From positions 62,001-126,000 of IMG/VR virus record IMGVR_UViG_3300046171_000231: a stretch of DNA of 64,000 nt, one strand, 5' to 3'. The notes under the pieces are model-generated. The model was not told the origin of the DNA. It saw nothing but the letters and a program-made list of their open reading frames with translations, and searched no databases. Shown here piece after piece: positions 32,931 through 60,081 of the stretch. Numbering within the stretch: position 1 is the stretch's first letter; every line of letters begins with the position of its first letter. Position numbers and translations under genes: made by a program.

Positions 32931-32935
32931 GTAGT

Positions 32936-32962
32936 CAGGGTTACGATTGTTTCGAGTCCTTT
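32936..32962 (-). repeat. conserved leader hairpin AAAGGACTCGAAACAATCGTAACCCTG, copy 1
   Basis: Matches 54618..54643 except in the loop. Confidence 0.85.
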
Positions 32963-32989
32963 CTAATGGTGAGGAAACCCTCACTTCTT

Positions 32990-33023
32990 TATTTATATTA
33001 ACAAAACTTTACAGAAAAGTCAA
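32990..33023 (-). promoter_or_regulatory. composite sigma70 plus late promoter of psbA
   Basis: TTGACT-17-TAATAT overlapping TATAAATA. Confidence 0.7.
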
Positions 33024-33036
33024 TAAGTATAAATAC

Positions 33037-33507
33037 TCAATTAAAATGATATGTTACTTCATTACTAGGCACATACCCACGCATACCACAAGATAAACAA
33101 ATACGAGGTACAGTGCTTGATATTCCCATATGCTCTAGACCTTTCTTAATAAAAATTGTATCACCAGCTTTTAATACAACAGGTTCCATATCCTCAACGA
33201 CATATGATATCTCACCTTCCAAGCATAAAATCAAAACATTAGTTGGGTCTGTATGTGCACCAATCCCTTCTGATGCACCAAGTGAAGAGAATATTTGAAT
33301 ATCTTGAAGAAAATATTTAAGATATTTTTTAAAACAATTCTTAATTTTTTGGGGGAATTCTTCAATATCAATATAACTTGTTTTAATTGTTCCACGCTCA
33401 TACTCATAAACTACGTACTCATCTGAATCATTATACAGATTTGGAAATGTAGATTTAGGTTCTTCCCCATGATTTTTTATTAGTTCAATTACTTCTTCCC
33501 AGTACAT
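33037..33507 (-). CDS. cupin/JmjC-like oxygenase
   Basis: GAHTDPTNVLILCLEG...LKAGDTIFIKKGLEH...RICLS. Confidence 0.75.
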   Translation of the reverse strand: MYWEEVIELIKNHGEEPKSTFPNLYNDSDEYVVYEYERGTIKTSYIDIEEFPQKIKNCFKKYLKYFLQDIQIFSSLGASEGIGAHTDPTNVLILCLEGEISYVVEDMEPVVLKAGDTIFIKKGLEHMGISSTVPRICLSCGMRGYVPSNEVTYHFN

Positions 33508-33527
33508 AATAATATAATATAATAATT

Positions 33528-33641
33528 TTATATATCTGTCTCTTCCATCATTGTTGACATCATTACTACGAAAAGTGTGGTTAATAACACTGTTCCCGAA
33601 AATATTGCTATAAACATCTCTAAAGTCTGATAATAGTTCAT
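33528..33641 (-). CDS. 37-aa single-TM micro-protein
   Basis: MNYYQTLEMFIAIFSGTVLLTTLFVVMMSTMMEETDI, ATGA coupling. Confidence 0.6.
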   Translation of the reverse strand: MNYYQTLEMFIAIFSGTVLLTTLFVVMMSTMMEETDI

Positions 33642-33739
33642 ACGTTTAATGTGTGGGCATTGATATAAGAAAATGATATCATTGCAGGGATGACCCAGCT
33701 AAACGGTAAAAACATTCTTATTTTTTCTTTTTGTTTCAT
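33638..33739 (-). CDS. 33-aa membrane micro-protein
   Basis: MKQKEKIRMFLPFSWVIPAMISFSYINAHTLNV, ATGA coupling at both ends. Confidence 0.6.
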   Translation of the reverse strand: MKQKEKIRMFLPFSWVIPAMISFSYINAHTLNV

Positions 33740-33849
33740 AATAGACCTACTGATCCTGCGGTTATTCCTACGACCATAAAAAAACCAAACTCCACCAAGT
33801 CTCTTGTACCTGGTGGAATAGAATTGACTATAGTGGACAAGAGTATCAT
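33736..33849 (-). CDS. 37-aa membrane micro-protein
   Basis: MILLSTIVNSIPPGTRDLVEFGFFMVVGITAGSVGLL, ATGA coupling. Confidence 0.65.
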   Translation of the reverse strand: MILLSTIVNSIPPGTRDLVEFGFFMVVGITAGSVGLL

Positions 33850-33923
33850 GAATATATGAACCCTAAACCACCTGTTGCTGTGTATGCGACTGCACACAAA
33901 AATACTACTCTGCTAATAATCAT
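33846..33923 (-). CDS. 25-aa membrane micro-protein
   Basis: MIISRVVFLCAVAYTATGGLGFIYS, TAATG/ATGA coupling. Confidence 0.55.
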   Translation of the reverse strand: MIISRVVFLCAVAYTATGGLGFIYS

Positions 33924-34096
33924 TATGCTCCCTGATAAACTGGTGTCATAACTCCACCTCCTTCATCATCATCGTCATCGTCATCTACTAAACGTAAAAA
34001 ATATTCAATAGCGACTAGAGCACTCACTGGATAGAAACACCATAGTATTGCTTTCCAAATTGGAAATGATTGTGCAGCGATGTTGAATTCTCCCAT
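33923..34096 (-). CDS. 57-aa membrane protein with acidic tail
   Basis: FPIWKAILWCFYPVSALVAIEYFL followed by a poly-Asp run and EGGGVMTPVYQGA. Confidence 0.7.
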   Translation of the reverse strand: MGEFNIAAQSFPIWKAILWCFYPVSALVAIEYFLRLVDDDDDDDEGGGVMTPVYQGA

Positions 34097-34138
34097 AACT
34101 TAAAGTTTTGTTACAATAGTATTTAGTTTTGTAAAGTT

Positions 34139-34228
34139 TTAAGCAAATACACTTGTGAATGTACTTGTTCCCAATGCCAACATAAAGATGTATGGCACGA
34201 CTTTAAATGGCACTGGATGTCTCTTCAT
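34139..34228 (-). CDS. 29-aa membrane micro-protein
   Basis: MKRHPVPFKVVPYIFMLALGTSTFTSVFA, TAATG coupling to hli. Confidence 0.6.
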   Translation of the reverse strand: MKRHPVPFKVVPYIFMLALGTSTFTSVFA

Positions 34229-34362
34229 TACACGAAACCTGGAATGATTTGACCTGTTGTTAGGTAAGCACCTAATCCTGCTACAATGCCGAGCATTGCT
34301 AATCTACCGTTAAGTTTCTCGGCAACTAGCTTTTCTTTTTCGATTGGTTTTGGTGTTGTCAT
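34228..34362 (-). CDS. hli: high-light inducible protein
   Basis: AEKLNGRLAMLG...TGQIIPGFV, start MTTPKP. Confidence 0.93.
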   Translation of the reverse strand: MTTPKPIEKEKLVAEKLNGRLAMLGIVAGLGAYLTTGQIIPGFV

Positions 34363-34469
34363 TAAAAAATACCTGGTATGATTTGTCCTGTTGTTGCGTA
34401 TGCACCGACTGCTGCTACGAAACCTAGCATTGCTGCCCATCCGTTAAATCTTTCTGCTTCTGGAGTCAT
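34362..34469 (-). CDS. hli: high-light inducible protein (absent from the ORF track)
   Basis: MTPEAERFNGWAAMLGFVAAVGAYATTGQIIPGIF. Confidence 0.93.
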   Translation of the reverse strand: MTPEAERFNGWAAMLGFVAAVGAYATTGQIIPGIF

Positions 34470-34517
34470 GAGTTTTTCCTCTTTGTTGATTGTGAATTGT
34501 GTGTTGAGTTTCATTTT

Positions 34518-34643
34518 TTAAAAGAAACCTGGTGCTATCCATCCGAATAGACCGTAGTTGACTGTGCCGATTACTAAACCGAGCATTGCGAGACGACCAT
34601 TAATCTTCTCTGCGTATCTCCAATATGAGTGCTGATGATCCAT
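34518..34643 (-). CDS. hli: high-light inducible protein
   Basis: MDHQHSYWRYAEKINGRLAMLG...WIAPGFF. Confidence 0.9.
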   Translation of the reverse strand: MDHQHSYWRYAEKINGRLAMLGLVIGTVNYGLFGWIAPGFF

Positions 34644-34840
34644 TAGAAGATACCTGGTATGATTTGACCTGTAGTGATGTACGCACCTAATAGTGCAACA
34701 AAACCAATCATCGCCCAACGACCATTTACTTTCTCAGCATTCTGAGGATATCCGTCATAGGAAGCACTTTCGTCGATATAAGGTCTTGTTTCAGTTGGGA
34801 AAGCGTTTTGTCTTCCACCTGATTCGGTTGTAACTGTCAT
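34643..34840 (-). CDS. hli: high-light inducible protein
   Basis: MTVTTESGGRQN...AEKVNGRWAMIG...TGQIIPGIF. Confidence 0.93.
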   Translation of the reverse strand: MTVTTESGGRQNAFPTETRPYIDESASYDGYPQNAEKVNGRWAMIGFVALLGAYITTGQIIPGIF

Positions 34841-34864
34841 TGAATTATTAATTTATGTAACAAT

Positions 34865-34893
34865 ATTATATAGTAAATATAAAATTTTGTCAA
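34865..34893 (-). promoter_or_regulatory. sigma70-type early promoter of the hli operon
   Basis: Perfect TTGACA-17-TATAAT. Confidence 0.85.
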
Positions 34894-34970
34894 GAAACTT
34901 TACAATTAAATGCCGATCCCAGTCAAGAAACCCTGATATAATTATTAAAAAATTATTAAGAATATAAGTT

Positions 34971-35504
34971 TTACTTATTAATCAATGGATTATAAACAAT
35001 ATTTCCAACAACCATACACCTTCCATCAGACTTGTTTGGTAGAGTATAATGATTTCTATGTGAATGAAAGAAAACTATTCTACCTGGTACGGGTTCTATC
35101 TCTTCTTCATCTAAGATAAAAGGAGAGGAACCCTCTGGTGCAGAGACACAATAATTAAATGACAGAGCATATGGAAAGTGATTATGTTTAGTTACATATT
35201 GCCCTTTATCATAATGTATTCCCCAACACTGATTAATTTCAAATCCTCCTCTATCAAAAGTAGCAGCACCATAATCTTTACTACTCCCTCCTCCACTAAC
35301 ATGAAAAGCAGCCTCAGGAATACAAGCATTAATCCAATATAGTAATATATCAATATCCTTTATACCTTTTTTATGAAGTCTCCAATCAGTTTTTCTTCCA
35401 CCTCCCATCACAGTTTCTTCTACATTAAAATTATTACAAACCGTATTATATAAAAATGGATTTATTTGTTCTCCTTGCCAGTAGTCCTCAGTATAGAAAT
35501 TCAT
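34971..35504 (-). CDS. 2OG-Fe(II) oxygenase-like protein
   Basis: WGIHYDKGQYVTKHNH...SFNY...PGRIVFFHS..NHYT...R. Confidence 0.75.
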   Translation of the reverse strand: MNFYTEDYWQGEQINPFLYNTVCNNFNVEETVMGGGRKTDWRLHKKGIKDIDILLYWINACIPEAAFHVSGGGSSKDYGAATFDRGGFEINQCWGIHYDKGQYVTKHNHFPYALSFNYCVSAPEGSSPFILDEEEIEPVPGRIVFFHSHRNHYTLPNKSDGRCMVVGNIVYNPLINK

Positions 35505-36286
35505 TATTTGTTTTCAAAACCTGGTGGAACACGATTAAAATACGGATCATAATCAAACATCTTATCCCAATCTTCGATGTTAGTTGAAGAGCATCTCCAG
35601 AATTGCCATATACCTTCGTAACTTGATTTATGAAATACATGAATGTGTATATCGTGTATTGATGAACCGAGTTCAAGCTTGTAAAGAAATAAAGGTATTG
35701 CGAATGTATTGCCAGAATTGTATATTAAATCATCTGCAACTGCTCTCGGTTTTGAACCTTGATCGAGTTTATACTTATCACCACGACAATGTAATCTTAC
35801 AAGTTTCTCTGCGTGATGTCTTGTAATTAAATAGCAAGCAGTTGAAAAGTCATTTATAAATCTACGATGCAACTGTGCATATACAGTGGCAGGGTTGATG
35901 ATTGCTAATTGAATGACATCATAATCATAAGGAATCTTTGAGTAAAAATCTTTCCACGTAAATCCCCAATGAAGTACTGTAGATATATCACAATCATCTT
36001 CCATCATCAAAGCACAAGGTGCATCAGTTTCAAGGAACATCTTCATTGCTTTTAAATGTGAGGTAGTACATCCTACTTCACTTGATGACATTCCATCAGG
36101 GTATGTTCCTTTTAATATGTCACTTAAATCATCTTCACGACCATCATATGCAGATACACGGGTATAATTTTCGATATCCCATTCCTTAAGCATATTCTCG
36201 GCAGATTCCCATCTTTCTGGTTCACCATCAAGATTAATACAATAGACTGGAGGAAGTCCTTTTAATTTGTATTTTGCCTTATTCAT
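35504..36286 (-). CDS. glycosyltransferase family 25
   Basis: YCINLD...R.SAYDG...EVGCTTSH...MEDD. Confidence 0.8.
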   Translation of the reverse strand: MNKAKYKLKGLPPVYCINLDGEPERWESAENMLKEWDIENYTRVSAYDGREDDLSDILKGTYPDGMSSSEVGCTTSHLKAMKMFLETDAPCALMMEDDCDISTVLHWGFTWKDFYSKIPYDYDVIQLAIINPATVYAQLHRRFINDFSTACYLITRHHAEKLVRLHCRGDKYKLDQGSKPRAVADDLIYNSGNTFAIPLFLYKLELGSSIHDIHIHVFHKSSYEGIWQFWRCSSTNIEDWDKMFDYDPYFNRVPPGFENK

Positions 36287-37179
36287 AGTTGTGTTTTAAT
36301 CCACTCCTCTACATTCATTTCGGGTTTCCAAGCAAATGTTTTTTGTATCTTATCAATGTTAGCCAAACTGTTTCTTGCCTCTCCAATTCTTGGTGGTATA
36401 TTAATTGTATCATCAGATATGAAAGATGCAATCTCATTCACTGAATAATTCTTACCAGACCCTACATTATATACTTGACCATATGCATCATCATCTGGAT
36501 TTGATATTGCTGCCATTACATTTGCGTTTGCTACATCTTTCACATATATGTAATCCCTTCTCTGTTCCCCGTCACCAACGATTGTCAGTGGTTCACCTGC
36601 TGCTTTCTGTCTTAAAAATATACCTGTCACAGGAGCATACTGACCCTTTCTGGGTGCTCTTTCACCAAAGACATTAAAGTATCGGAATACAATTGTCTTA
36701 AGTCCGTAGAGGTCTGTATACATCTTACATAACTTCTCACCTGCAATCTTTGATACTGAATATGGATTTAAACAATCATCTGGTTGTGTCTCAATATTGG
36801 GTGCTTCATTCAATCCGTAACCTGATGATGTTGATGAATATAATACTTTCTTCGCTCCAACTTCTCTTGCACATTGTAATACATTACAAGTTCCTATCGT
36901 ATTAATATTGAGTGCATTTACTGGATTCTCAATCGCAGGTCCGATTCTTGCTTCTGCTGCAAGATGAAAAACATAATCAGCACCAGTAAATGCATTCTTA
37001 AGTCCTTTATAATCTGTGATATCGATATCTACATTTAAAGTATCTTTTCTCCAATGAAAGTTATCATTGTCAGAATATTCATTATCGATCACAATAACCA
37101 TATGATCTAATCTTTTAAGTTCTTCAACGATGTGTGACCCGATAAAGCCAGCACCACCAGTAACGATTGAAATTGTCAT
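36283..37179 (-). CDS. NAD-dependent nucleotide-sugar epimerase/dehydratase
   Basis: GGAGFIGS, YSVSK, RYFNVFG, GDGEQRRDYIYV. Confidence 0.9.
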   Translation of the reverse strand: MTISIVTGGAGFIGSHIVEELKRLDHMVIVIDNEYSDNDNFHWRKDTLNVDIDITDYKGLKNAFTGADYVFHLAAEARIGPAIENPVNALNINTIGTCNVLQCAREVGAKKVLYSSTSSGYGLNEAPNIETQPDDCLNPYSVSKIAGEKLCKMYTDLYGLKTIVFRYFNVFGERAPRKGQYAPVTGIFLRQKAAGEPLTIVGDGEQRRDYIYVKDVANANVMAAISNPDDDAYGQVYNVGSGKNYSVNEIASFISDDTINIPPRIGEARNSLANIDKIQKTFAWKPEMNVEEWIKTQL

Positions 37180-37817
37180 TAATATAAAACGGTTGGTTTC
37201 CAGAAATTACGATTTGGTTGTATCACTTCAATTGTAGGATATGAAGTCAAAGATTGATCTGTACCATTAGAACTGGTTTGATAAAACAAAGGGTCATCAA
37301 ATGCATAGACATTATAGTATCTTTGTATTTCAGCGAAACCAATATCTTGATGTTGTGCAGTATCAAAAGATTGATGTGCAATCTTGCTACAGAGAGAAAC
37401 ATATTCCTCATCTAAGTATAGCACAGAATGAGCACTCAGCATATTATATATTCTCAAAAGACCACCGTTCAATTCTTCATATTGAACGCAAGGACCAGAG
37501 TGAGAATTCATCCTACCCCAAGATGAGATGCCAAGATAAACTGCGTCAGAGTCATCAGGTACATCAATAATAGTTCTAAAGTTTTTTGTTTTGCAATCAT
37601 CTTCAAATATAATAAAAGGTGGTTCTACTTCGTTCAATGCTTTGTAGTGAGAGTAAGAACAACCTGCTAATGGTCTGTCTGGTGTATACTCACCATCTAT
37701 ACGAATGATATTTTCAAATCCACATTCGTCTAATACATCTACAATACTATTCTTTTTCTCAACATCTTGTTGAAGATTGATATAGACAGCAGGTATTTCT
37801 CTAAGATCTAAGTTCAT
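37179..37817 (-). CDS. GT25-like glycosyltransferase
   Basis: VYINL...GCSYSH...IIFEDD. Confidence 0.6.
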   Translation of the reverse strand: MNLDLREIPAVYINLQQDVEKKNSIVDVLDECGFENIIRIDGEYTPDRPLAGCSYSHYKALNEVEPPFIIFEDDCKTKNFRTIIDVPDDSDAVYLGISSWGRMNSHSGPCVQYEELNGGLLRIYNMLSAHSVLYLDEEYVSLCSKIAHQSFDTAQHQDIGFAEIQRYYNVYAFDDPLFYQTSSNGTDQSLTSYPTIEVIQPNRNFWKPTVLY

Positions 37818-38497
37818 TGTGGTCTTTCTTCAATGCAATAATTTTAGCATCATAAGGATACTCGGAGTTATACATTTGCTCCTCTGCAAAACAATATGAT
37901 GGTGTCAATGATTTAGTTGGTGGATTATCTATCAGGTAACGATTCATCTGTGATTCATCGTGCCATAATGCAATAACATCATTCTCTAAATCTTTTGTGA
38001 CTCTATCGGCAAGTATCTCTGCCATTTCTAAAAATCTTTTTGTTGAACCACCATTGAATCCACCTGCATAATATAACTCACCTTCTTCACCTGGTGGTAC
38101 ATATGCAAGTGACTTTGGATTACGGTCATATGTTCTCTGCTCTTTTGGATAGAATGATTGATATGGATGCATAGTTGCAACTAAATCATCTAATACTTCA
38201 TCACCAACCTTATCTACGATTCCCATATCTACATCAAAGTAGTAACAGTAATCAAACTGTGAAATATAATCTTTCTCTTTTACAAAGTAATTGTATCTCT
38301 TTGAGTGTTGGCATTGGCCAAGGTTCGTGGTCAATTTGAGATACCTTAATATTATCTGATGTTTCTACATCGTGTTCAGTAAATAATAAACCTTGTATCT
38401 CGTGACCATTGAGAAACTTCTCTTCAATATTATCATACAATCTTTCTACAAATTGTATGTACTTATTAGTTGCAATAGTCAGAATAAGAATTTTCAT
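37801..38497 (-). CDS. glycosyltransferase family 6, ABO-like (1-nt insertion at ~38301)
   Basis: IATNKY, WPMPTL|KRY, DVD, YYAGGFNGG, WHDESQMNRY. Confidence 0.88.
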
Positions 38498-39360
38498 CTT
38501 AATATATCTAATAAAGTTTTGACAGAGCATTCAAAGGATAGATTGTCCTTAATAAATGCTTTTGGATCATATTCGTCTAGTGTAGCATAAAATTTAGAAA
38601 ATGTCACATTCAGTTCATCTATGTTAAAAAATACTTCTCCACATCTCTCATCCCAATAAGGTATCGATGTTGCAGGAACTCTGTATGCTTCTCCTTGGTC
38701 TAACCATTCTTTAATATCCCAAGCAATAATCGGAACTCCCATTGACATAATCTCTTGAACTGCAATACCCTGACTTTCTGTACCATTAATAAGGAAACAG
38801 AACTTTGCTTGATTAACTAAATCCTTAAAACCATCTTCACCATATCCACCATACTCTACCATTTTATATGTAAGATTTTTACTATCTAAAAATTGCTTGA
38901 CTGTATCTAGTTCTTTCTGCTCTCTTCTCTTGAAATATATCAGACAATCATATGTAATATCTCTTTCATTATTAAATGTCTCAATACCAACTGGCCAGAC
39001 TGATAACTTATTCTCTGGTAAATTAAATTTATTGATAAACTTATCTTTGACCCATTGAGATGGTGCAATCATCTTTTTGTAATAATCCTGATGTTCGATT
39101 AGAAACTGTCCATAGGTATCAAACAACCAAACCTGTGGTCCAATAATACAAGTATCAAGTTCTATTTTAGAATGTTTTTCGTGTGCAATATCATTATATT
39201 GTAATAGAAAATTATGTTCGTACTTCTCTTCATTGATAGCATAATCGATCTTCTCTTGGTCTAAACTCATCAATAGATTTTTTACAACCTTATGAGGACC
39301 ATTCATTGTTTGAGTATGACCCCAATATGATTCAGAATAATATAAGTTTATCATAACCAA
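38494..39360 (-). CDS. GT-B (family 4-like) glycosyltransferase
   Basis: APSQWVK, ESQGIAVQEIMSMGVPII. Confidence 0.7.
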   Translation of the reverse strand: MVMINLYYSESYWGHTQTMNGPHKVVKNLLMSLDQEKIDYAINEEKYEHNFLLQYNDIAHEKHSKIELDTCIIGPQVWLFDTYGQFLIEHQDYYKKMIAPSQWVKDKFINKFNLPENKLSVWPVGIETFNNERDITYDCLIYFKRREQKELDTVKQFLDSKNLTYKMVEYGGYGEDGFKDLVNQAKFCFLINGTESQGIAVQEIMSMGVPIIAWDIKEWLDQGEAYRVPATSIPYWDERCGEVFFNIDELNVTFSKFYATLDEYDPKAFIKDNLSFECSVKTLLDILR

Positions 39361-39771
39361 GTAGTTTGTTTTAGCATTTCTTCTGGAAGTTTATCAGTCC
39401 AAATGTAATCAGTATGTTTATTATCTATCTTTGGTTCAAACATCTTTTTGACAGGAACAATATGTAAGAGTGTAGGTGTATGAGTTGCCCTTGCATCTGG
39501 AACATCTGGAAAAATATAATTAGAATATCCGATAATTTTAAATTCAGAAAAACTTTGACCTATCTCTTGCATCATAACTCTTTCTGGCTAACTCTGCCAT
39601 TGTTTCTTTATATCTTAATCTACCACCAACTACCCAGTATACATCTTTAACTGGTTCTTCTTTCCTTTTAATTAATAGATATTTTTTCTCAGCAAAAATT
39701 AAAAAGTCTGCACAGAAAACTGGCATCGTTTTTATTATCTTTTGATACTCTTCTTCTGGTATAAAAGTCAT
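39351..39771 (-). CDS. GDP-mannose mannosyl hydrolase-like Nudix protein (1-nt insertion at ~39586)
   Basis: LLIKRKEEPVK..W..GGRL...ET..E.A.R...QEIG...TH. Confidence 0.75.
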
Positions 39772-40568
39772 ACCCAAGTCCAGTCACTAAACTCCATATC
39801 TTTTACAGATTTACCTGCACAACTATCAGCAAACCAATTACTTGGAGCAACAACTTTTTCACTATCACCTAACCAAGCTCCCCACCAAGAGAATGATGAG
39901 TTTGCAATAATATGATAATCACATTTTGTCATCAAACACAAATCAATATCTGCATCATTACCTTCAGATATCATCACACTATCATCAGCAAAGAGTTCTT
40001 GTTCTTGACACCATTTCGGGTCATCTGAAAATACAAGTATCTGAACATTTTTATCAAACAACTTTAATGCATCTTCATAATAACTCATCGGTTGTAATGG
40101 ATGATTATTATTCACAGTATAATCTGTTCTTCTGATATGTAATGATACAACTTTATTTCCGCTAATTGACTCATACATCTCATTACATAATGATTCTACT
40201 TCATCAGAAAACTTAAAATCATTCTTGATTTCATCTTTTACATGTTCAAAATATTTTGGTGATTGATAGTAACCAAAGAAGTCAACATTATCAGGACAAG
40301 ACCTAAAAAGTTCTTCATCAAACTCGTGCATCCTTTCTTGTAGAATAGGATTCTTTGATATCTGAATATTATTCTTACTTATATTTTCAAATACGTTGTA
40401 GATATTCAGAGGTGATTCTTTTACTAATGGATCATTTTGTCCAAAGACTTGCTCTGGTGGAATACTAAATTCATATCCACGATTTCTTGCAATACCTTTT
40501 AACGATGCATATTGAAACATCTGATTTGCAAGTCTTCCAAGATTACCAATGTTATTAAAACTAATCAT
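39768..40568 (-). CDS. alpha-1,2-fucosyltransferase (GT11)
   Basis: GRLANQMFQYA, GYYQS, HIRRTDY, FSDD, IIANSSFSWWGAWL. Confidence 0.9.
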   Translation of the reverse strand: MISFNNIGNLGRLANQMFQYASLKGIARNRGYEFSIPPEQVFGQNDPLVKESPLNIYNVFENISKNNIQISKNPILQERMHEFDEELFRSCPDNVDFFGYYQSPKYFEHVKDEIKNDFKFSDEVESLCNEMYESISGNKVVSLHIRRTDYTVNNNHPLQPMSYYEDALKLFDKNVQILVFSDDPKWCQEQELFADDSVMISEGNDADIDLCLMTKCDYHIIANSSFSWWGAWLGDSEKVVAPSNWFADSCAGKSVKDMEFSDWTWV

Positions 40569-41304
40569 ATTCTCCGTAAACCTTTCCGTTAATTGTGTTG
40601 TAAATTTGTGTTTTTAATTTTGTGCTTGAATAGTCGTGATTACGACTTAACCAAACAATTTCAATAGATAAATCTTTTCCTGTATAACTACCATCCATAT
40701 AATCAGTTCCTAAGAAACGAATATGATAATCTTTTAGATAATGATGAAATGTTTCTTCTGCTTGATAAACTACAACATCATCAACATATTTAATAGCGTG
40801 TAGTATTTCTTTTCGATCTTCTACAGTCTGGACTGGTTTTAATTTATTCGGTCTTGCCATTGATGGGTCTTCGTGTAATGCAACTGTTAGATGATTACAA
40901 TGTTCTTTTGCTTCCTTAAACATTCTTATATAACCAGGATGTATTACATCAAAGTTACCTGCAATAATACCTTTCTTTGGTGGAACAGTTTTCTTCCACT
41001 CCTCTACATTAATACCTTTATCATCTATAAACAAATCTGCAGTTGGTTTATGAAACATAGGCTCAATCTCGTGATACTTATAACCCCAACGATCTAACTG
41101 CTCTCTTGTTAATTGAGTCCAATCTTTACCAGAACCTCTTCCTCTTGCAGTCATCATAATAATAGTATGACCTTCATCATAAAGACGATTGACTTGCTCA
41201 ATCATAAAAGGATAAGGTTGTGAATCCCAATACCTTACATTATGACCATCTGGATCACTTGGAGTTTCACATAAAGTCCCATCTATATCAAAACAATATT
41301 TCAT
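40561..41304 (-). CDS. bifunctional HAD phosphatase / cytidylyltransferase-like protein
   Basis: N-terminal FDIDGTL...TARG...KP..D.FIDDK, C-terminal GNFDVIHPGY...R...YSST. Confidence 0.8.
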   Translation of the reverse strand: MKYCFDIDGTLCETPSDPDGHNVRYWDSQPYPFMIEQVNRLYDEGHTIIMMTARGRGSGKDWTQLTREQLDRWGYKYHEIEPMFHKPTADLFIDDKGINVEEWKKTVPPKKGIIAGNFDVIHPGYIRMFKEAKEHCNHLTVALHEDPSMARPNKLKPVQTVEDRKEILHAIKYVDDVVVYQAEETFHHYLKDYHIRFLGTDYMDGSYTGKDLSIEIVWLSRNHDYSSTKLKTQIYNTINGKVYGEYD

Positions 41305-41804
41305 ATAACTCCGTGAAGAAAAATCTGATGGACACACTCAACAACCCCATAACTATCACTGTTAATATGATAGTTCCAAAGTGCATTTTTTGCAACTGTT
41401 TTTATTGTATTATCAATCTTAAATCCTGTTAGAACTCCATAATCAGTTTCAGTTTCTTCGCACCAATTCAAACAGTTCAACATATTAGGTGACTCACCAC
41501 CAGAACTCATAATAATTACGAGAGTATCTTTCTCAACATAATACTCTAAGAACTTTTCATATGCGTGATCATATCCAAAATCATTTGATAACATTGTTAT
41601 CATTGATGGGTCGGATAACACTGATACTTTCTTACCATTAAACTTCATATAATCTTGAGATATATGAGATGCAACAGAGTTGCTACCACCATTTCCTAAA
41701 ATTATAATTCTTGGATGTGTATAATATTCTTTCTGAAACTTGAAGAACTCAACTTCCATATGAGCAGATTCAAGAGTTTTAACATACTCTTCAAAAGGAT
41801 TCAT
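41301..41804 (-). CDS. gmhA: phosphoheptose isomerase (SIS domain)
   Basis: GNGGS...ASH...SNDFGY...SSGGESPN...E..H. Confidence 0.8.
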   Translation of the reverse strand: MNPFEEYVKTLESAHMEVEFFKFQKEYYTHPRIIILGNGGSNSVASHISQDYMKFNGKKVSVLSDPSMITMLSNDFGYDHAYEKFLEYYVEKDTLVIIMSSGGESPNMLNCLNWCEETETDYGVLTGFKIDNTIKTVAKNALWNYHINSDSYGVVECVHQIFLHGVI

Positions 41805-46469: not shown

Positions 46470-47092
46470 TTTAAATACACTCCAAAACCTGTATCATTAT
46501 GTGCCCATTCAGTTACATCATACTTATAAGTATAGTCTAACTCTGTATGAAATCTCCACTTCGTGCGACCAGGCATAGATGGACGTATATCATCAACTAA
46601 CATTACACAATCATCTTTCATATATTGTTTCCATACTATTAACTCTGACAATACTTGTTCATAAGTATGAATAGTATCTAAAAATATCATTGAGATGCTT
46701 TTCTTTTCAAAAGTTTTTGATACTCTTTCAGAATCTAAAGCATCAAAATCATTGAGTATATGAACTCTAGAGTCATTCTTTATCTTATCATTTACAAAAC
46801 GAACGTCATCTACAATATCTAATGTATAGAACTCACTGTTAGGTTGAAGTGCATCATAAATGGAGAGTATTCCAAGTCCTTCACGATTACCTAATTCAAC
46901 AATAGTTCCTTCAATATTAGATGTGAGGTTATGTAATAAAGAAAAGTATCCATGATTTCCATCCTTATTAAATATGAAAACATTGTAGACATTATCATTA
47001 CGAATTAAATCTGCAAGTGATTCATCATTCCATTTGATATATGGACTACTCTGAGTTTCAGAAATTATTTTTTCAAGTGTTGTGTGATTCAT
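46466..47092 (-). CDS. SAM-dependent methyltransferase (Methyltransf_24-like)
   Basis: VELGNREG, IFLDTIHTYEQV, LVDDI. Confidence 0.7.
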   Translation of the reverse strand: MNHTTLEKIISETQSSPYIKWNDESLADLIRNDNVYNVFIFNKDGNHGYFSLLHNLTSNIEGTIVELGNREGLGILSIYDALQPNSEFYTLDIVDDVRFVNDKIKNDSRVHILNDFDALDSERVSKTFEKKSISMIFLDTIHTYEQVLSELIVWKQYMKDDCVMLVDDIRPSMPGRTKWRFHTELDYTYKYDVTEWAHNDTGFGVYLK

Positions 47093-47865
47093 CTAAAATT
47101 AGAAACAGGAATTTTTTCTTCATCAACAATTATATTTCCCACATCATATGCTCTTGTATATGGTACAAGATGAGGATCTAAAACTCTTATGTTATAACGA
47201 AGTTCAATTACTGTTCTTTCAATTGGCTGTTTACTATCAGGTTTTGTGCTTTGACCTAATCCTTCATTAAGATAATAACCAAGATTTATTGGTAGATGTA
47301 AACCTTTAGCATTGAAAGCAAGTCTTAATGCTAAATCATAATCAGCACCTTGAACTAACTGTTCATCAAATACACCAGACTTTTCAAGTAATGATTTACG
47401 AAACATAAAGTATGGACCTAAAATCATACCTGTTTTAAGTTCATCTTCTCTTCCTGTCTCATCAACATATTGTCCTTCTGTACTACCAAATCTAGGAACT
47501 ATAACATAATTACCATATACAAAATCAACATCAGGATTTTCATCCAATGCCTTTGCCATCACTTCAATTGAATCTGGTGTTCTTAAATCATCTACATTCC
47601 AAATACAAAGATAATCACCTGTTGCATATTCAATACAACGATTCATAGATGTACCAATAGGGTCAACACCTTCTACTTTAATATGTAAAATATTATCATA
47701 CTCTTCATTATATTCTTCGACCAGTTTAACTTCTTCATCTGAAGGGTCATTGTGGTCTAAAACAATCTCTAAATCTTTATGAGTTTGTGTGGAAAGATTA
47801 TCTAAAAAACCCTTCATATACTTGCTCATATTATAGCAAGGAGTAATGGTGCTTACTTTAGTCAT
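47089..47865 (-). CDS. glycosyltransferase family 2
   Basis: TITPCYN, ATGDYL..WNVDD, GADYDLALR. Confidence 0.85.
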   Translation of the reverse strand: MTKVSTITPCYNMSKYMKGFLDNLSTQTHKDLEIVLDHNDPSDEEVKLVEEYNEEYDNILHIKVEGVDPIGTSMNRCIEYATGDYLCIWNVDDLRTPDSIEVMAKALDENPDVDFVYGNYVIVPRFGSTEGQYVDETGREDELKTGMILGPYFMFRKSLLEKSGVFDEQLVQGADYDLALRLAFNAKGLHLPINLGYYLNEGLGQSTKPDSKQPIERTVIELRYNIRVLDPHLVPYTRAYDVGNIIVDEEKIPVSNFR

Positions 47866-48706
47866 AATTTTTTTTCATTGCTTCAAATACTTTTGCAATG
47901 CCAGTTTCTAAATCAGTTTTTGGAGACCAGTATTTTTCAATGAAACGGTCTGCTTCATTTCTTTTATCAAGTTGAACAGAGTCACTTGCTTGACCTGGTA
48001 GAATATTAATTGGTTTACCAATTAATTTAAATTCATTTTCTATTATTATAGCAACTTCACGAATAGATGTATAGTCAAAGTTAGTGATATGTAACGGGTC
48101 GTTAGCATAGAACTCATCATAATTTTTCATTACAGCTTCTAGTCCTTCACAACAATCTTCTGCGTATAAAAACTGTCTAACTTCTTCACCATCTGTCATC
48201 ATCTCAAAGTCACCTTCTTCAAATCCTTTTCTAATAAAGTCTGTGATTACGTGTGCTTTATCGTGGTCTTTTTCAATACCATATACATTCCAGAACTTTA
48301 CGATTAATCCACCAAGTGATTCAGTATATAATTCACCGACTCTTTTCAAAGTTCCATATGGTGAGTAACTCATATTACTCATTTGAGATGATGCGAATAC
48401 AAATGGTTTATCATATTCTTGTAGAAGACCAAATGCATTTGCCATCAATCTTGTATTGTTATTCACAAAATCAAATGTATGCTGATACTTTTTAAGATAC
48501 CTAGAACCACCTACATCAAACGCAAGAAAGAAAACAAAGTCACTTTCCATAATCGCATTGCGAAGATATGTATTAGGAATGTGAGTCATATCCTGATGCT
48601 CACCATTTACCATATCAAACTCTCTTACAATATGTCCTTTCTTTGAAAGATACTCTGAAAGATATGCACCGATTTGACCACTTGAACCTAAAACGGTTAT
48701 TATCAT
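47858..48706 (-). CDS. NAD-dependent epimerase/dehydratase
   Basis: LGSSGQIG, YGTLK, WNVYG, DGEEVRQFLYAED. Confidence 0.8.
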   Translation of the reverse strand: MIITVLGSSGQIGAYLSEYLSKKGHIVREFDMVNGEHQDMTHIPNTYLRNAIMESDFVFFLAFDVGGSRYLKKYQHTFDFVNNNTRLMANAFGLLQEYDKPFVFASSQMSNMSYSPYGTLKRVGELYTESLGGLIVKFWNVYGIEKDHDKAHVITDFIRKGFEEGDFEMMTDGEEVRQFLYAEDCCEGLEAVMKNYDEFYANDPLHITNFDYTSIREVAIIIENEFKLIGKPINILPGQASDSVQLDKRNEADRFIEKYWSPKTDLETGIAKVFEAMKKNYD

Positions 48707-49752
48707 TGATCCATCCATTTCATAAACCTACTAAATGGATTTAATTTAGGTTCAACAACCTCTTCTACTACTGGTTTATTTCCCATCTGATTCTCATTTA
48801 TCCAGTCATATGTTTTCTTAATACCTTCTTCAAGTGTCATTGTATAATTCCAATCTAACTTCTCTTTAATTAAATCGTTATTTGAATTACGACCACGAAC
48901 ACCTAACGGACCTTCAATATGATTTCTTCTCTACTTTTTTATCTGCTGCCTTTGCTGCAATATCTACAAGTCCATTGATAGATACCATTTCTTCTGAACC
49001 TATATTCACAGGACCAGTAAAGTCTGATTGAACTAATCTATAGGTTGCTTCGACGCATTCATCAACGAACAAGAAGGAACGAGTTTGTAAGCCATCTCCC
49101 CACACCTCAATAGTTCCACCTTCCTGTGGGAGTTCAGCAACTTTGCGACAGATTGCTGCAGGAGCTTTTTCTCTTCCACCTGTCCAAGTTCCTTCGGGAC
49201 CGAAGATATTATGATATCTGGCAATGCGAACAGGAACATCGTAGTTACGATGATAAGAAAGGTATAACCTTTCAGAGAAAAGTTTTTCCCAACCATATTC
49301 TGAATCTGGATTGGCAGGGTAGGCAGTATCTTCACGGCAGTCTGGTGTGTTTGGGTCTAGTTGATTATGCTCTGGGTACATACACGCAGAGGATGAAAAG
49401 AATATCTTTGGTTTATAATCTTTGACGTTTCTAAGTATGTTTAGATTGAATGACTTGCAGAGTTATTCATTACATCTGCATCGTGTTCTCCTGTAAAAAT
49501 ATATCCTGCTCCACCCATATCAGCAGCAAACTGATATATCTCATCAAACTCTATATTAGTTACATCTTTGCAAAATGCTTGGTCTGTTAAATCACCAGTT
49601 AGAAATTCATCTGCTTCTGTTCCAGAAAAATCTGGTTCTTTTACATCTGCACCTCTTACCCAGTATCCTTCTAACTTGAGTTTCCTTACCATATGACTTC
49701 CGATGAAGCCACCTGCACCACAAACAAGTGCTTTTTTAGTTTCAGTTTCCAT
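48703..49752 (-). CDS. GDP-mannose 3,5-epimerase-like SDR (insertions at ~49450-49457 and ~48924)
   Basis: GAGGFIGS, AADMGGAGYI, SSSACMYP, YGWEK, GGREKAPAAICRK, GPLGVRGRNSNN. Confidence 0.85.
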
Positions 49753-49769
49753 AATCTATTTCACTCCTT

Positions 49770-50708
49770 TTATATAGAACGTAAATTAGACTCGTTATTT
49801 TTCATCCACTCATAGGTAGATTCAAGTCCTTCTCGTAAACTAATCTTCGGTTCCCATCCCAAAGATTTCATTTTATCTACATTCAAAACCTTTCTTGGAG
49901 TTCCATTTGGTTTTGATGTATCCCATTCATAATCGTTCTTATATCCAGTAACTTCAACTATCATCTCTGCAAGTTCTTTGATTGTTACATCTTCTCCTGT
50001 TCCAATATTAATTATCTCTTCACTGTCATATCTTTCCATACAAACTAATAATGCTGCTGCTAAATCATCAACGTGTAGAAATTCTCTTTTTGCAGAACCA
50101 TCACCCCATAGTTTTACAACCCAATGCTTACTCTTTTCTAATGAACCGTGAAACTTTGAAAGTAAAGATGGTAGAACGTGTCCATAATTATGATCAAAAT
50201 TATCATTCGGTCCGTATAAATTAGTCGGCATTACTGCGATTCGCATTCAAACCATACTGTTTACGATATGCCTGACACATTTTGATACCTGCAATTTTAG
50301 CGATTGCATATGCATCATTGCTTGGTTCTAGATAACCTGATAGTAATTGGTCTTCTGTGATTGGTTGCTTTGCTAACTTTGGATAAATGCAAGAAGAACC
50401 TAGAAATAGTAACTTTCGAACACCAACCATTGCTGCACAACTGATAACATTTGATTGAATCATCAGATTCTCATATATGAAATCAGCAGGATAATCAGCG
50501 TTACCACCAATACCACCTACCTTTGCTGCTGCAAGAAAGACATACTCTGGTTGTTCCATCATAAAGAACATCTTAACATCTTTCTGGTCAGTCAAATCAC
50601 ATTGAAAACGACTCACAGGTTATGATGTTTGTAAAACCTTGAGATTCTAAATGACGAACGATTGCAGAACCAACTAGTCCGTTATGTCCTGCAACAAATA
50701 TTTTTGAA

Positions 50709-50719
<11 letters not shown>
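49770..50719 (-). CDS. fcl: GDP-L-fucose synthase (insertions at ~50618 and ~50240)
   Basis: [55 protein letters not shown]. Confidence 0.9.
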
Positions 50720-51721
<1,002 letters not shown>

Positions 51722-51727
51722 AGTCAC

Positions 51728-51756
51728 ATAATAAAGTATAAAGTATTAATTGTCAA
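51728..51756 (-). promoter_or_regulatory. sigma70-type promoter of gmd and the glycan operon
   Basis: TTGACA-17-TATTAT, ending 6 nt before the ATG. Confidence 0.65.
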
Positions 51757-52091
51757 TCTCTCCCGTGGTCATCTTCAAACCTTTCAATGTCATCCTCTTC
51801 AAGATAAGGACCACTTTGAACCTCAATGATTTTAAGTGGTATCTTGCCAGGATTTGACAAACGATGCTTACATCCCAGAGGAATGTATGTGCTTTGGTTC
51901 TCACCAATCAACTGTCTTGCATCATTTAATTGAACTTCTGCTGTTCCACTGACAACAATCCAATGCTCTGTTCGATGGTGATGCTTCTGAAGGGATAATC
52001 TATGACCTGGTTTAACTTCAATGTTTTTGACTTTAAATCTATCACCTTGATCAATTACTTCATACCAACCCCAAGGTCGTTCTTCCTTCAT
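51753..52091 (-). CDS. mannose-6-phosphate isomerase type II cupin domain
   Basis: ERPWGWY...[13 protein letters not shown]...HRLSNPG...IEVQSG.YLEEDDI.R. Confidence 0.9.
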
Positions 52092-52291
52092 TTCTTAAAG
52101 TACTTGTTTATCATATCAATTTGATCTTGATACTTTGCAATCATATCAAGTTCTTGTTCGATTGCTTCAACTATATTTGAGTGCTCACCAATCCCTGCAG
52201 GATTAGTTAGATACACTTCTACGTTTGCAACGTGTTTTTGTATGTCACCTTGAGCGTGGGCTAAAAGTGCTTTGATTAGTTGTTCTCTCAT
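52088..52291 (-). CDS. conserved cyanophage hypothetical protein
   Basis: [15 protein letters not shown]...[12 protein letters not shown] overlaps. Confidence 0.7.
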
Positions 52292-52508
52292 TCTTTTACG
52301 TAACAGGGTACTCCTTCTGGGTCTAACCATTTTGTATACTCAAGGTCTTCGATACACATATCGAATTGAATTGAGTTATCACAAAGGTACATATCAGTAT
52401 ACCTCTCAGTATATGTATTGTACTTTTGAATACGGTAATCTGGTTGACCGTTCTCTAATTTCCTTTCGTAACAAAGCGATAGGGATACCTTTCAAGAATA
52501 ACATCCAT
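52288..52508 (-). CDS. conserved cyanophage hypothetical protein (1-nt indel at ~52460)
   Basis: MDVILERYPYRFV...ENGQPDYRIQKY...DMYLCDN...EYTKWLDPEGVPCY. Confidence 0.6.
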
Positions 52509-52532
52509 GATGTTTCATAATAATATACTACT

Positions 52533-52560
52533 ATTATACACCATAATACTGTCTAGTCAA
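52533..52560 (-). promoter_or_regulatory. sigma70-type promoter
   Basis: TTGACT-16-TATAAT. Confidence 0.6.
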
Positions 52561-52568
52561 GCAAAAAG

Positions 52569-52856
52569 TTATATATTTTCTCCTCTATATGCAGGGATAT
52601 CTCCGTCATCATCATCTTCATCTTCATCAAATTCTTCTGGTGTAAATACTAATAACTCCTCTCCTGTCTTTACACCTTCCATCTCTGGATGTGGTGCTGG
52701 CATCTTATATGGTTTCATTGCATCGCCATATGATTTGACAGGTTTCTTATCCATCTCTGATAATGTACTTGTCATCATCTTAAACATAAACGCAAAGGTA
52801 GCAGCAAATAGTGCTACAAAAAACACAAGATAGATAAAAATTAGAGTATCATTCAT
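52569..52856 (-). CDS. DUF2973-like membrane protein
   Basis: N-terminal TM helix, PHPEM...GEELLVF, acidic tail. Confidence 0.65.
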   Translation of the reverse strand: MNDTLIFIYLVFFVALFAATFAFMFKMMTSTLSEMDKKPVKSYGDAMKPYKMPAPHPEMEGVKTGEELLVFTPEEFDEDEDDDDGDIPAYRGENI

Positions 52857-53239
52857 CGATGAAATATTTTTTGAATAGGAACTTGTCGTATTCTATCTAT
52901 AACATCAGTCTCTACCTTATCTGCAATCCTCTCCAAGATATTAACATCTAAATCCATGAATGGTGGAACGATTCCTAACACTCTTAACAAACCATCTACA
53001 AACAAAGCAAGAGCAGTGAATCCTAGAATCATACTGAGAACTGTAGCATCACGATTATGCTTTGCCATTGACTCTTCATCAATCTTCCGTGCTTCATCTA
53101 CTGCTTCTTTAACAGCATCAGAAATTAATTCATCTACTTCATCTTTGGTGTAGGTGTACTTTCTTATCTTCTCCTCCGTGACTGTTCTCTCTACAGGAAC
53201 GTCGGACAAAGGAAACTCTGTGATTAGTGCTTTGAACAT
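52853..53239 (-). CDS. conserved membrane protein
   Basis: KHNRDATVLSMILGFTALALFVDGLLR. Confidence 0.65.
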   Translation of the reverse strand: MFKALITEFPLSDVPVERTVTEEKIRKYTYTKDEVDELISDAVKEAVDEARKIDEESMAKHNRDATVLSMILGFTALALFVDGLLRVLGIVPPFMDLDVNILERIADKVETDVIDRIRQVPIQKIFHR

Positions 53240-53272
53240 ATCGGATTGCTTTTTATTATGTATTATATCATA

Positions 53273-53419
53273 TCATCTCGTAACCACCACTATATGGTCG
53301 TTTCGCCATTTTTTTGTCTGTTTCTCCTGTAAGTCAGCAATCTTCTTGAGGGTTTCCTGACTTTTCTTAATTTCGTCTATCTTTTTTTGAACTTCATCGA
53401 GTTCCTTTTTGATATCCAT
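53273..53419 (-). CDS. 48-aa coiled-coil protein
   Basis: MDIKKELDEVQKKIDEIKKSQETLKKIADLQ. Confidence 0.5.
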   Translation of the reverse strand: MDIKKELDEVQKKIDEIKKSQETLKKIADLQEKQTKKWRNDHIVVVTR

Positions 53420-53495
53420 TCGTCTCTAAAATGCTTCCCTTATGACCTCCTCACGTATAGAAAAGAGTGGTGAGTTCTGGTCTAAGTGTAATTAT

Positions 53496-53749
53496 TTAGC
53501 GGACTTCAAAGTCTAACTTGCGTATTTTACGCTTACTACGCTCTTCTTGCCACTCAATTTGCTCTGTAGATAACCCACTTCTTTCATTCACAGAGTAGGT
53601 ATTTAACATAATAACTTGCCCTAAATCAACAGCAGATATCACATCCCCTTTGATGGTTGTCATATTTCACAACCACAACAAACTGATTTTCCTGCAGCAG
53701 CCTTTATCTCTTTTCCACAAGGTCTACACCTTACTCTTATTGGTTCCAT
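53496..53749 (-). CDS. zinc-ribbon hypothetical protein (1-nt deletion at ~53665)
   Basis: VRCRPCGKE...CCGC.NM...SAVDLGQV...KRKIRKLDFEVR. Confidence 0.6.
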
Positions 53750-53795
53750 CTTTAACATTCTAACCTTTGCTTCATTCACTTGTTTTTATTATATA

Positions 53796-53951
53796 TTATT
53801 TTAAATCTATTTGCCTACACACCATATAAGTTTTTATCGCCTTACAGGAGAATGCTTTCTCTTTACTTAATAAAAAAATGATAGAGGTCAGTTGAACCAA
53901 AATGGCAACTGGAACCACTACCTTTAAAATTATCTTTGCTTTACTAGTCAT
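53796..53951 (-). CDS. 51-aa membrane protein
   Basis: TM segment followed by a Cys pair. Confidence 0.45.
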   Translation of the reverse strand: MTSKAKIILKVVVPVAILVQLTSIIFLLSKEKAFSCKAIKTYMVCRQIDLK

Positions 53952-53981
53952 CACAAAATGTTACGATATCATAACTATATA

Positions 53982-54125
53982 TCACCAATCATCTTCCATT
54001 TCTATTTGCTGTACAGGACAAGGTGGTGCTGTTCTGTGATAATTAACGTGTAGCAACTCTATGAACACAAGAGCACAAACCAATATCATATTGATCTGAA
54101 ACAACGGATGCTTGAGTAAATTCAT
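53982..54125 (-). CDS. 47-aa membrane protein
   Basis: MNLLKHPLFQINMILVCALVFIELLH. Confidence 0.55.
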   Translation of the reverse strand: MNLLKHPLFQINMILVCALVFIELLHVNYHRTAPPCPVQQIEMEDDW

Positions 54126-54130
54126 TATAT

Positions 54131-54160
54131 AAAAAAAGACCCCTACTATGTAGAGGTCTT
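54131..54160 (-). terminator. intrinsic terminator
   Basis: AAGACCTCTAC-ATA-GTAGGGGTCTTTTTTT. Confidence 0.85.
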
Positions 54161-54180
54161 TGTAAAGTCGTTACTTTAAT

Positions 54181-54540
54181 TTAGAAAACGAACTTAACAC
54201 CTGCTTTAGCAGAGAAGTCAACATCGTCACTAGGAGTTGTTACACCAGAGATTTCTCCGTAGAACTTATCATAAGAACCACCAAGGTATCCAATGAATTC
54301 TACATCACCGAACTCATCAGAAGTTTCTGTATGAGTTACTGTTGGACCACCAGAAACGTACCAACCGATTCCTGACTCTGTTGCTCCCTCATATCCAACT
54401 ACTGCTTCAAGACCACCAGATGTATATGCTCCATCAGGATATGATCCACTTGCTTCCAAATTAACGTATGGACCAGCAAAGGCTGCACCTGCGAATAGGA
54501 AAGGGGTTGCTGCTACTGCAGCGATTGTTGATTTAATCAT
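54181..54540 (-). CDS. DUF680-like exported beta-barrel protein
   Basis: Signal peptide ending AFA/GPYVN, alternating beta strands, C-terminal AGVKFVF. Confidence 0.75.
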   Translation of the reverse strand: MIKSTIAAVAATPFLFAGAAFAGPYVNLEASGSYPDGAYTSGGLEAVVGYEGATESGIGWYVSGGPTVTHTETSDEFGDVEFIGYLGGSYDKFYGEISGVTTPSDDVDFSAKAGVKFVF

Positions 54541-54567
54541 TTTTGTTTATAGTATCTCGCTAGGCAT

Positions 54568-54643
54568 TAAAAAACCTGCGGATGGAAATTCTTTCGACTA
54601 GAATTTTACATTCTACGCAGGGTTACGATCTTTCGAGTCCTTT
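54568..54643 (-). promoter_or_regulatory. structured 5' leader: conserved hairpin (copy 2) plus terminator-like stem
   Basis: AAAGGACTCGAAAGATCGTAACCCTGCG...CGCAGGTTTTTT. Confidence 0.6.
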
Positions 54644-54657
54644 GTTCTATGTAATGG

Positions 54658-54691
54658 TATTTATTGTAACACAAGGTTGAGATCGTGTCAA
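54658..54691 (-). promoter_or_regulatory. composite sigma70 plus late promoter
   Basis: TTGACA-17-TACAAT overlapping ATAAATA. Confidence 0.75.
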
Positions 54692-60046: not shown

Positions 60047-60081
60047 TAAATTGTTACGAGGTCATAATATTTATTATATCA

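Follow-up and report, generated by a model that had tools for sequence, protein, structure and literature searches.

We analysed a 64,000-nucleotide (nt) stretch of DNA, positions 62,001 to 126,000 of the IMG/VR virus record IMGVR_UViG_3300046171_000231, hereafter the window. Two of its genes, psbA and a gene of the DUF680 type, carry the same short RNA hairpin, here called H1, in their leaders. Cyanophage psbA is a standard example of a viral auxiliary metabolic gene, and H1 offers a concrete handle on the control of its expression. The hairpin is short and invariant, and psbA has it in common with a second gene, which is highly expressed and found in nearly all cyanomyophages. DUF680 is the label of this second gene in GenBank relatives, and its current Pfam name is Phage_OMP (PF24653). 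The psbA locus contains the following features, in window coordinates.

32990..33023, minus strand: composite psbA promoter, TTGACT-17-TAATAT overlapping a T4-type late box TATAAATA
32969..32984, minus strand: 5'-proximal hairpin GUGAGG-GUUU-CCUCAC, ahead of H1 (-9.0 kcal/mol, z -2.9)
32936..32962, minus strand: H1 copy 1, loop AACAA, in an insert of about 37 nt in the psbA leader (fold and shuffles)
32844..32943, minus strand: PhotoRC-II RNA (RF01717), 62.8 bits against a gathering score of 39
31719..32808, minus strand: psbA (D1) coding region (Pfam Photo_RC, 9e-76), with one break of the frame near 32031

H1 reads AAAGGACUCGA-loop-UCGUAACCCUG on the minus strand, at 32962..32936 and 54643..54618. 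It is 27 bases long. Both 11-nt arms are identical between the two copies, and the loops are AACAA ahead of psbA and AAGA ahead of the DUF680 gene. The first copy is located 128-154 nt upstream of psbA. The second is located 78-103 nt upstream of the DUF680/Phage_OMP gene, which encodes a 119-aa signal-peptide protein. The pattern GGACTCGA-N3-8-TCGTAACC has two matches in the window and none in 100 shuffles. The whole virus genome of 235,761 base pairs (bp) likewise contains two matches to the core pattern, and allowing three mismatches revealed no site in it beyond the same two. ViennaRNA folds both copies into two stems, AGG/CCU and CGA/UCG, separated by an internal loop. An earlier, sequence-only reading of the window had described this fold, and two copies that differ in the apical loop only; both descriptions are correct, down to the exact coordinates. 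The finding is genuine, is not due to chance and extends further than that reading had it.

H1 is strongly conserved among related leaders. Its helix positions show zero variation over 66 distinct rows of the DUF680 alignment, and the bases drawn as unpaired are conserved as strongly as the paired ones. The loop varies in length (4-5 nt) and in sequence (AAGA, AAGAA, AACAA, AAUAA and others), with the arms fixed. The variation in loop length argues for an RNA element rather than a spaced DNA site. On the psbA side, position 3 of the 5' arm and position 4 of the 3' arm form A.C, A-U or G-C. Rarer variants of the outer stem read GGA/UCC or GGGA/UCCC, and once UGGGA/UCCCA, with pairing kept through the change. 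The predicted H1 fold rests on the loop variation and on the few psbA-side variants. We also searched both strands of the genome with 11-12-mers for an antisense or trans partner of H1, and found nothing above chance. A role as GATC/TCGA methylation sites was considered and rejected, because 5-nt loops destroy GATC.

The energy of H1 is -3.3/-3.4 kcal/mol with z about -0.3, which is no better than shuffles. Stability alone therefore cannot explain the invariance. This bears on the mRNA stabiliser that the sequence-only reading had offered as one role. A generic 5' hairpin that protects against 5'-end-dependent attack by RNase E/J would suit the promoter-proximal position of H1 at the DUF680 gene, and host RNase E matters in cyanophage infection. 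However, at psbA the much stronger GUGAGG hairpin is located 5' of H1, stronger hairpins also precede H1 in some DUF680 leaders, and 20 invariant bases would not be needed for such a role. Because H1 is weak and is not 5'-terminal at psbA, a plain stabiliser is improbable, and that part of the earlier reading is not supported. The same differences separate H1 from stabilisers of the ompA type, which share its location in the 5' leader. With its weak fold and, at psbA, a -9 kcal/mol hairpin ahead of it, H1 does not belong to that type.

A scan of IMG/VR found the exact H1 core in at least 120 viral contigs. Among the matches listed, the first downstream open reading frame (ORF), assigned by blastp, is DUF680 in 86 and psbA in 10; most of the others are DUF680 leaders that were mis-called owing to an AUG within the RNA, plus about six chance matches in GC-rich contigs. 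H1 is almost always found in a DUF680/Phage_OMP leader and more rarely ahead of psbA, and several contigs carry it at DUF680 yet not at psbA. The cultured Prochlorococcus myophages show both arrangements. P-HM2 has H1 at both psbA and DUF680. P-TIM68 and P-SSM2 have it at DUF680 only, in P-SSM2 as the variant GGAAUCGA..UCGUACCCC. H1-containing contigs are also present in metatranscriptomes, in both gene contexts. The proposal of a shared cis-element is upheld: H1 is real and conserved, and it occurs in the 5' leaders of transcripts, where two gene contexts strongly predominate.

Among 401 sampled cyanobacterial genomes, the H1 pattern had one forward match, with an unrelated loop, compared to six for a reversed control pattern. 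The lack of above-chance H1 in these genomes suggests that the element is phage-specific within the searched set. An exact-core scan of genome contigs was uninformative on hosts, as the matches listed were only chance ones in unrelated GC-rich genomes. An H1-like site with two mismatches inside uvsW of P-SSM2 was likewise dismissed as a chance match. Separately, an exact H1-like match is found at an ORF end about 180 nt upstream of talC in one contig (L056, 6670-6689; also in the near-identical L068). It precedes talC's own promoter, and is either a remnant or a third gene context.

Both copies of H1 are located downstream of a composite early-plus-late promoter. The psbA promoter, TTGACT-17-TAATAT+AAATA at 33023..32990, is a sigma70-type promoter close to consensus, with a -10 hexamer that continues into the late box, and the DUF680 promoter has the same architecture. 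The genome contains 78 TTGAC-N16-18-TAnnnT sites and 25 TAnnnTAAATA sites, and only these two promoters combine both. The overlapping sigma70 and late promoters reported earlier ahead of both copies are thus the only two such composites in the genome. The distance to H1, given earlier as 14-27 nt, needs correction at one of the two. The gap between late box and H1 is about 15 nt at DUF680; at psbA it is about 28 nt, and the stronger hairpin (32984..32969) comes first. The composite promoter is present in 107 of 133 distinct related DUF680 leaders and in 13 of 17 H1-bearing psbA leaders. In most DUF680 leaders, GG begins 10-17 nt past the late box, and H1 is thus promoter-proximal. H1-less psbA leaders can also carry the composite promoter, so that the promoter is a module separable from the hairpin. 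A further promoter that nearly makes a third composite (TTGCAA-17-TATAAT+AAATA, two mismatches in the -35) is found on the minus strand at about position 60078 of the window, genome position 122078.

Host-like promoters reportedly drive the middle genes of these phages. P-HM2 is the nearest relative in culture, and its psbA and DUF680 genes are both assigned to middle expression clusters (PMC5082946, S2 table). The two genes thus share an expression class there, besides the composite promoter. The small regulon suggested by the sequence-only reading comprises at most two genes: DUF680 alone in most phages, and both genes in a sub-lineage.

The psbA copy of H1 adjoins PhotoRC-II, an orphan motif since 2010. 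Like the psbA copy, PhotoRC-II is located in the psbA leader, and it is likewise an orphan cis-regulatory motif. The hit in the window, which is above the gathering threshold, classifies the element downstream of H1 and not H1 itself. H1 is outside the modelled structure, beyond its two hairpins. Only the unpaired model positions 1-8 are shared, overlapping the last 8 nt of H1 in its 3' arm, and the conserved UAAC at positions 1-4 is the end of that arm. Most PhotoRC-II copies, mainly of the Synechococcus-phage type, have no H1 and carry a different 5' hairpin in its place or none. (The initial search pattern for PhotoRC-II relatives was too loose, and its matches were filtered by psbA context.) The psbA leaders of Prochlorococcus phages are collinear, in the order promoter, GUGAGG hairpin and PhotoRC-II. 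The GUGAGG hairpin is conserved both with and without H1, and H1 is a clean insertion of about 37 nt. The DUF680 copy of H1 has no PhotoRC-II match even at E up to 10. PhotoRC-II leaders without H1, and an H1 at DUF680 without PhotoRC-II, indicate that the two are separable. To this extent they are separate, as had been claimed; the 8-nt overlap and the different hairpins that other PhotoRC-II copies hold at the place of H1 qualify the claim.

In some phages, the block common to both leaders extends past H1 into CCCUGCGUA of Box1, an element of the DUF680 leader described below. This points to transfer between the psbA and DUF680 leaders, and regulatory modules move between leaders as discrete blocks. 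Such blocks could be read as recombination scars, H1 having no function of its own and hitch-hiking with the promoter. The discrete indel behaviour of H1 and the continuation of the shared block into Box1 agree with this. However, H1 is invariant while its flanks, the spacers and the P3 stems of the DUF680 leader diverged freely, and the two copies have promoters with unrelated spacers. We regard a functionless scar as hardly credible.

The conserved block could also act as DNA, as an operator downstream of the start for a host or phage transcription factor. A GTA-N8-TAC sequence, the NtcA-box consensus, is found at 32944..32931 on the minus strand, where it shares bases with the 3' arm of H1 at psbA. 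Of 17 psbA leaders that contain H1, 13 retain this box, in one case with another N8, and cyanophages carry predicted NtcA sites (PMC3037559). The DUF680 copies, however, read GTA-N8-TAG/TTG/GAA and do not contain the TAC, and the loop inside the conserved block is 4 or 5 nt long. The psbA box is inside the transcript and 31 nt from the next TATAAT, whereas about 22 nt upstream of a -10 is expected, and this placement does not suit activation by NtcA. With 95 GTA-N8-TAC boxes in the genome, a chance match is plausible, and we consider an operator distinctly improbable. The TATAAT in question, at 32894-32899 on the minus strand, is located in the PhotoRC-II linker, where most PhotoRC-II copies have TATAAAT. 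It may be an internal promoter inside the 'RNA motif'.

Ahead of the DUF680 gene, H1 is part of a much larger structured leader, which the first reading missed. The locus contains the following features.

54658..54691, minus strand: composite DUF680/Phage_OMP promoter, TTGACA-17-TACAAT+AAATA
54618..54643, minus strand: H1 copy 2 with loop AAGA, first domain of the DUF680 leader (fold and shuffles)
54609..54622, minus strand: Box1, 5' strand of the terminator-like P2 stem, whose CCU is also the 3' strand of the H1 outer stem (folds and pair tallies)
54586..54606, minus strand: P3 hairpin, with an invariant GUCG in the loop (7 of 7 pairs changed on both sides)
54569..54584, minus strand: antibox CAUCCGCAGG and U-run, pairing with Box1 (P2) or Box2 (hairpin B) (folds and pair tallies)
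54554..54565, minus strand: Box2 (GCCUAGCGAGAU), 3' strand of hairpin B, with GCGAG invariant (RNAalifold and compensatory changes)
54181..54540, minus strand: DUF680-type gene, encoding a signal peptide and a small beta-barrel-like protein (Pfam PF24653 Phage_OMP, 8e-30)

The leader is about 115 nt long, and H1 is its first domain in alignment A1, which consists of 57 non-redundant DUF680 leaders. H1 is followed by Box1 (CCCUGCGUAGAUG), P3, a CAUC linker, the antibox (CGCAGG), the U-run, Box2 (CUUGCGAGAUAC), an A-rich tract and the AUG. Box2 is a near copy of Box1, and the antibox can pair with either. Pairing with Box1 creates P2, a long terminator-like stem followed by the U-run (-13.1 kcal/mol and z -2.7 in the window). 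Pairing with Box2 creates hairpin B, the form preferred by RNAalifold (-10.7 kcal/mol and z -3.3 for the window copy). The CCU that closes the H1 outer stem is also part of P2, as its pairs 4-6, beside the U-run. Folds ending at the U-run contain P2 in 57 of 57 leaders and the H1 outer stem in 3 of 57. In full-leader folds, P2 is found in 33 of 57, hairpin B in 24 and the H1 outer stem in 24, the last confined to folds with hairpin B. Of 135 leaders, 91 can form either P2 or hairpin B, and 128 contain a U-run of at least four. With a stable stem directly ahead of a U-run, between promoter and start codon, and with a mutually exclusive alternative structure, the leader resembles an intrinsic terminator or attenuator.

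Both alternative helices are supported. At pair 5 of P2, 91 leaders have G-C and 14 have A-U. The seventh base of the antibox covaries with Box2, in six pair types, and not with Box1. In alignment A2, which is anchored on the protein, 97.5% of cells pair compared to 85.1% in shuffles. The covariation score is 0.318 compared to 0.111 in shuffles (0 of 500 reach 0.318), and is at most 0.084 with slid partners. All seven P3 pairs vary on both strands. The two alternative helices, together with the U-run and the strong covariation, give the leader the features of a switch.

Rfam 15 contains no relevant match for the window copy or for five canonical loci, the best overlap being a chance one to GadY (E 0.95), and no description of the leader RNA was found in the literature searched. 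A covariance model of the leader, R1, matches the window at 54648..54536 with 95.7 bits. It also matches, at 80-115 bits, 75 of 80 DUF680 loci collected through the protein, a sample free of bias from the RNA pattern. The sequence-only reading had named Rfam membership and a lack of conservation, covariation or 5' untranslated region (5' UTR) bias as grounds against it. The leader is in no Rfam 15 family, and R1 confirms conservation in the 5' UTR. Covariation is present in the leader as a whole but is lacking in the H1 stems of the DUF680 set. The DUF680 leader is a new family of putative cis-regulatory RNAs, of a kind already familiar, and some PhotoRC-II leaders share its portable, invariant hairpin module. 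It is abundant in ocean viromes and metatranscriptomes and absent from Rfam, and can therefore be added as a new family.

In many loci (e.g. L007, L011, L031), an AUG in the P3 loop (CCAUGUCGGG) opens an upstream ORF. The frame of these ORFs is that of DUF680 in some contigs and a different one elsewhere, which can mislead gene callers. A leader peptide starting at this AUG was rejected, as neither frame nor length is conserved and the window loop contains no AUG.

The leaders of Synechococcus myophages (S-RIM8, Syn30, S-CAM9, S-T4, S-SM2, S-SSM7 and MbCM1) keep only P3, CAUC and hairpin B, and contain no H1, no Box1 and no U-rich loop. Their hairpin B shows compensatory swaps, including CUGCGGG:CCGCAAG, CUGCUGG:UCAGCAAG and CUGUGGG:CCACAAG. 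The co-occurrence of H1, Box1 and the U-run suggests that they are a lineage-specific front end added to an older core. Synechococcus-phage DUF680 leaders (L440, L441, L444, L446 and L451) have another conserved 5' domain, ..GCCUCAAUUACUCGCG.., and often a second promoter directly ahead of P3.

The conservation of H1, the two genes that it precedes, the limits of the module, the alternative helices and the composite promoter are shown by the analysis. From these we tentatively infer, at somewhat short of an even chance, that H1 is a recognition hairpin for a trans factor and is coupled to the leader switch. H1 would be a transcribed, sequence-specific and portable 5'-leader module of T4-like Prochlorococcus cyanophages. 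Its home would be the DUF680/Phage_OMP leader, as the first domain of the structured RNA. Alone, it is predicted to be too weak to win the competition with P2. A partner, more likely a protein than a ligand, would bind H1 and stabilise it. The stabilised H1 would deprive P2 of its basal pairs and shift the leader to a form with H1, P3 and hairpin B, leading to read-through and the expressed state. Hairpin B is the form that all cyanomyophages share. The working mode would be like that of a protein-dependent antiterminator hairpin. In the sub-lineage of this virus and P-HM2, the H1 block of about 37 nt was inserted into the psbA leader between the 5' hairpin and PhotoRC-II, which may place D1 synthesis under the same factor as DUF680.

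The partner could instead be a small molecule. H1 would then be an aptamer and the DUF680 leader a riboswitch, in which the ligand stabilises H1 against P2, and the sensor would have been copied into the psbA leader. The bases of the internal loop and those flanking the apical loop are invariant for no thermodynamic reason, and H1 overlaps a terminator-like stem followed by a U-run. Lacking an Rfam match, it would be a new class. Of the covariation expected for an aptamer, the leader as a whole shows a strong signal, and the H1 stems never vary. However, H1 is very small, with about 20 informative nt, D1 and an outer-membrane-like protein have no obvious metabolic link, the gene context suggests no ligand, and Synechococcus phages have an unrelated 5' domain in its place. 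An aptamer is in our view quite unlikely.

H1 could also work with no trans factor at all. It could be a folding or tertiary module, through docking of its A-rich loop or pairing of its UCGA with the GUCGA of the P3 loop, or an enhancer of translation or of a standby site. The loop is A-rich, with the pattern AA..A, and the UCGA of H1 and the GUCG(A/G) of the P3 loop are both invariant and self-complementary. However, only 4 bp of H1-P3 pairing are possible, the psbA leader has no P3 partner, and otherwise intact leaders can do without H1. We judge a factor-free role rather unlikely. A bolder version of the recognition hairpin, which we hold to be unlikely, would make H1 the sensor of a previously unknown phage switch, a riboswitch or an RNA-binding antiterminator, that co-controls D1 and an envelope beta-barrel protein in Prochlorococcus infection. 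In that case the DUF680 leader would represent a new class of RNA, abundant in the ocean, whose expression platform is bistable.

Several points weigh against the recognition hairpin. No partner protein or ligand has been identified, and a cognate antiterminator protein was not searched for. The H1 stems do not covary in the DUF680 set, where the five core pairs (G-C, C-G and A-U) are invariant, which leaves this set neutral on the H1 fold. The transcription starts of both leaders are predictions. In assembled metatranscriptome contigs, depth climbs at the start predicted for DUF680 and goes up, not down, across the U-run, so that termination is not evident; contig depth is a poor measure of RNA ends, and short RNAs are lost in library preparation. 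Contig ends also coincide with the boundaries of the conserved block, which makes starts and termination unreadable from these contigs. The AT-rich nature of the hairpin B loop could by itself account for the U-run. The leaders of Synechococcus phages work with neither H1 nor Box1. Finally, the psbA leader has no terminator after H1, so the mechanism cannot apply there unchanged.

The proposed recognition hairpin resembles several known systems. RAT hairpins, the targets of BglG, SacY and LicT, are short and imperfect with internal loops, and are weak alone. They overlap the 5' strand of a terminator, and protein binding blocks the terminator. H1 is likewise a short, weak and imperfect hairpin with an internal loop that overlaps the 5' strand of a terminator-like stem. 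Unlike RAT hairpins, it has no sequence similarity or Rfam match to them, and termination here is predicted. We know of no CAT-domain protein in these phages, and none was looked for here. The lambda nut boxB and HK022 put hairpins mediate processive antitermination from just downstream of phage promoters. H1 is similarly promoter-proximal, has an A-rich loop and is located ahead of a terminator-like stem in a phage transcript, but differs in sequence and size and is present in only two copies. To our knowledge, T4-like phages have no N-like factor. PeSL cassettes of T4-like phages combine a near-consensus sigma70 promoter with a stem-loop and are linked to modular shuffling (PMC2839356, PMC4122927). 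H1 resembles them as a repeated promoter and stem-loop module tied to such shuffling in a T4-type genome. A PeSL has its stem-loop, a terminator, on the upstream side of an early promoter; the sequence is loose, and hyperplastic regions contain many copies (PMC4122927). H1 is downstream of its promoter, invariant and present in two copies per genome, and is not a PeSL.

Minor observations concern the two genes and their annotation. The psbA frame breaks near 32031, where frame 0 ends in ..AAHGYFR* and the next frame runs on to the normal C-terminus. This single-base frameshift is either an assembly error or the mark of a pseudogene. A similar single frameshift is found in psbD (window 30583-31660, minus strand) near 30990-31050, where ..TQEEETY is followed by SMITANRFW.. 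in another frame. In the GenBank entry of P-HM2, the 'hypothetical protein' PHM2_211 (GU075905.1, 171588-171722) is wholly within the psbA leader, covering H1 and PhotoRC-II, and is probably not a gene. S-SM2, S-SCSM1 and P-SSM2 have two tandem DUF680-type genes. In the T7-like cyanopodoviruses P-SSP10 and S-RIP1, a DUF680/Phage_OMP-like gene adjoins psbA, which hints at a functional link of the two genes that is independent of H1.

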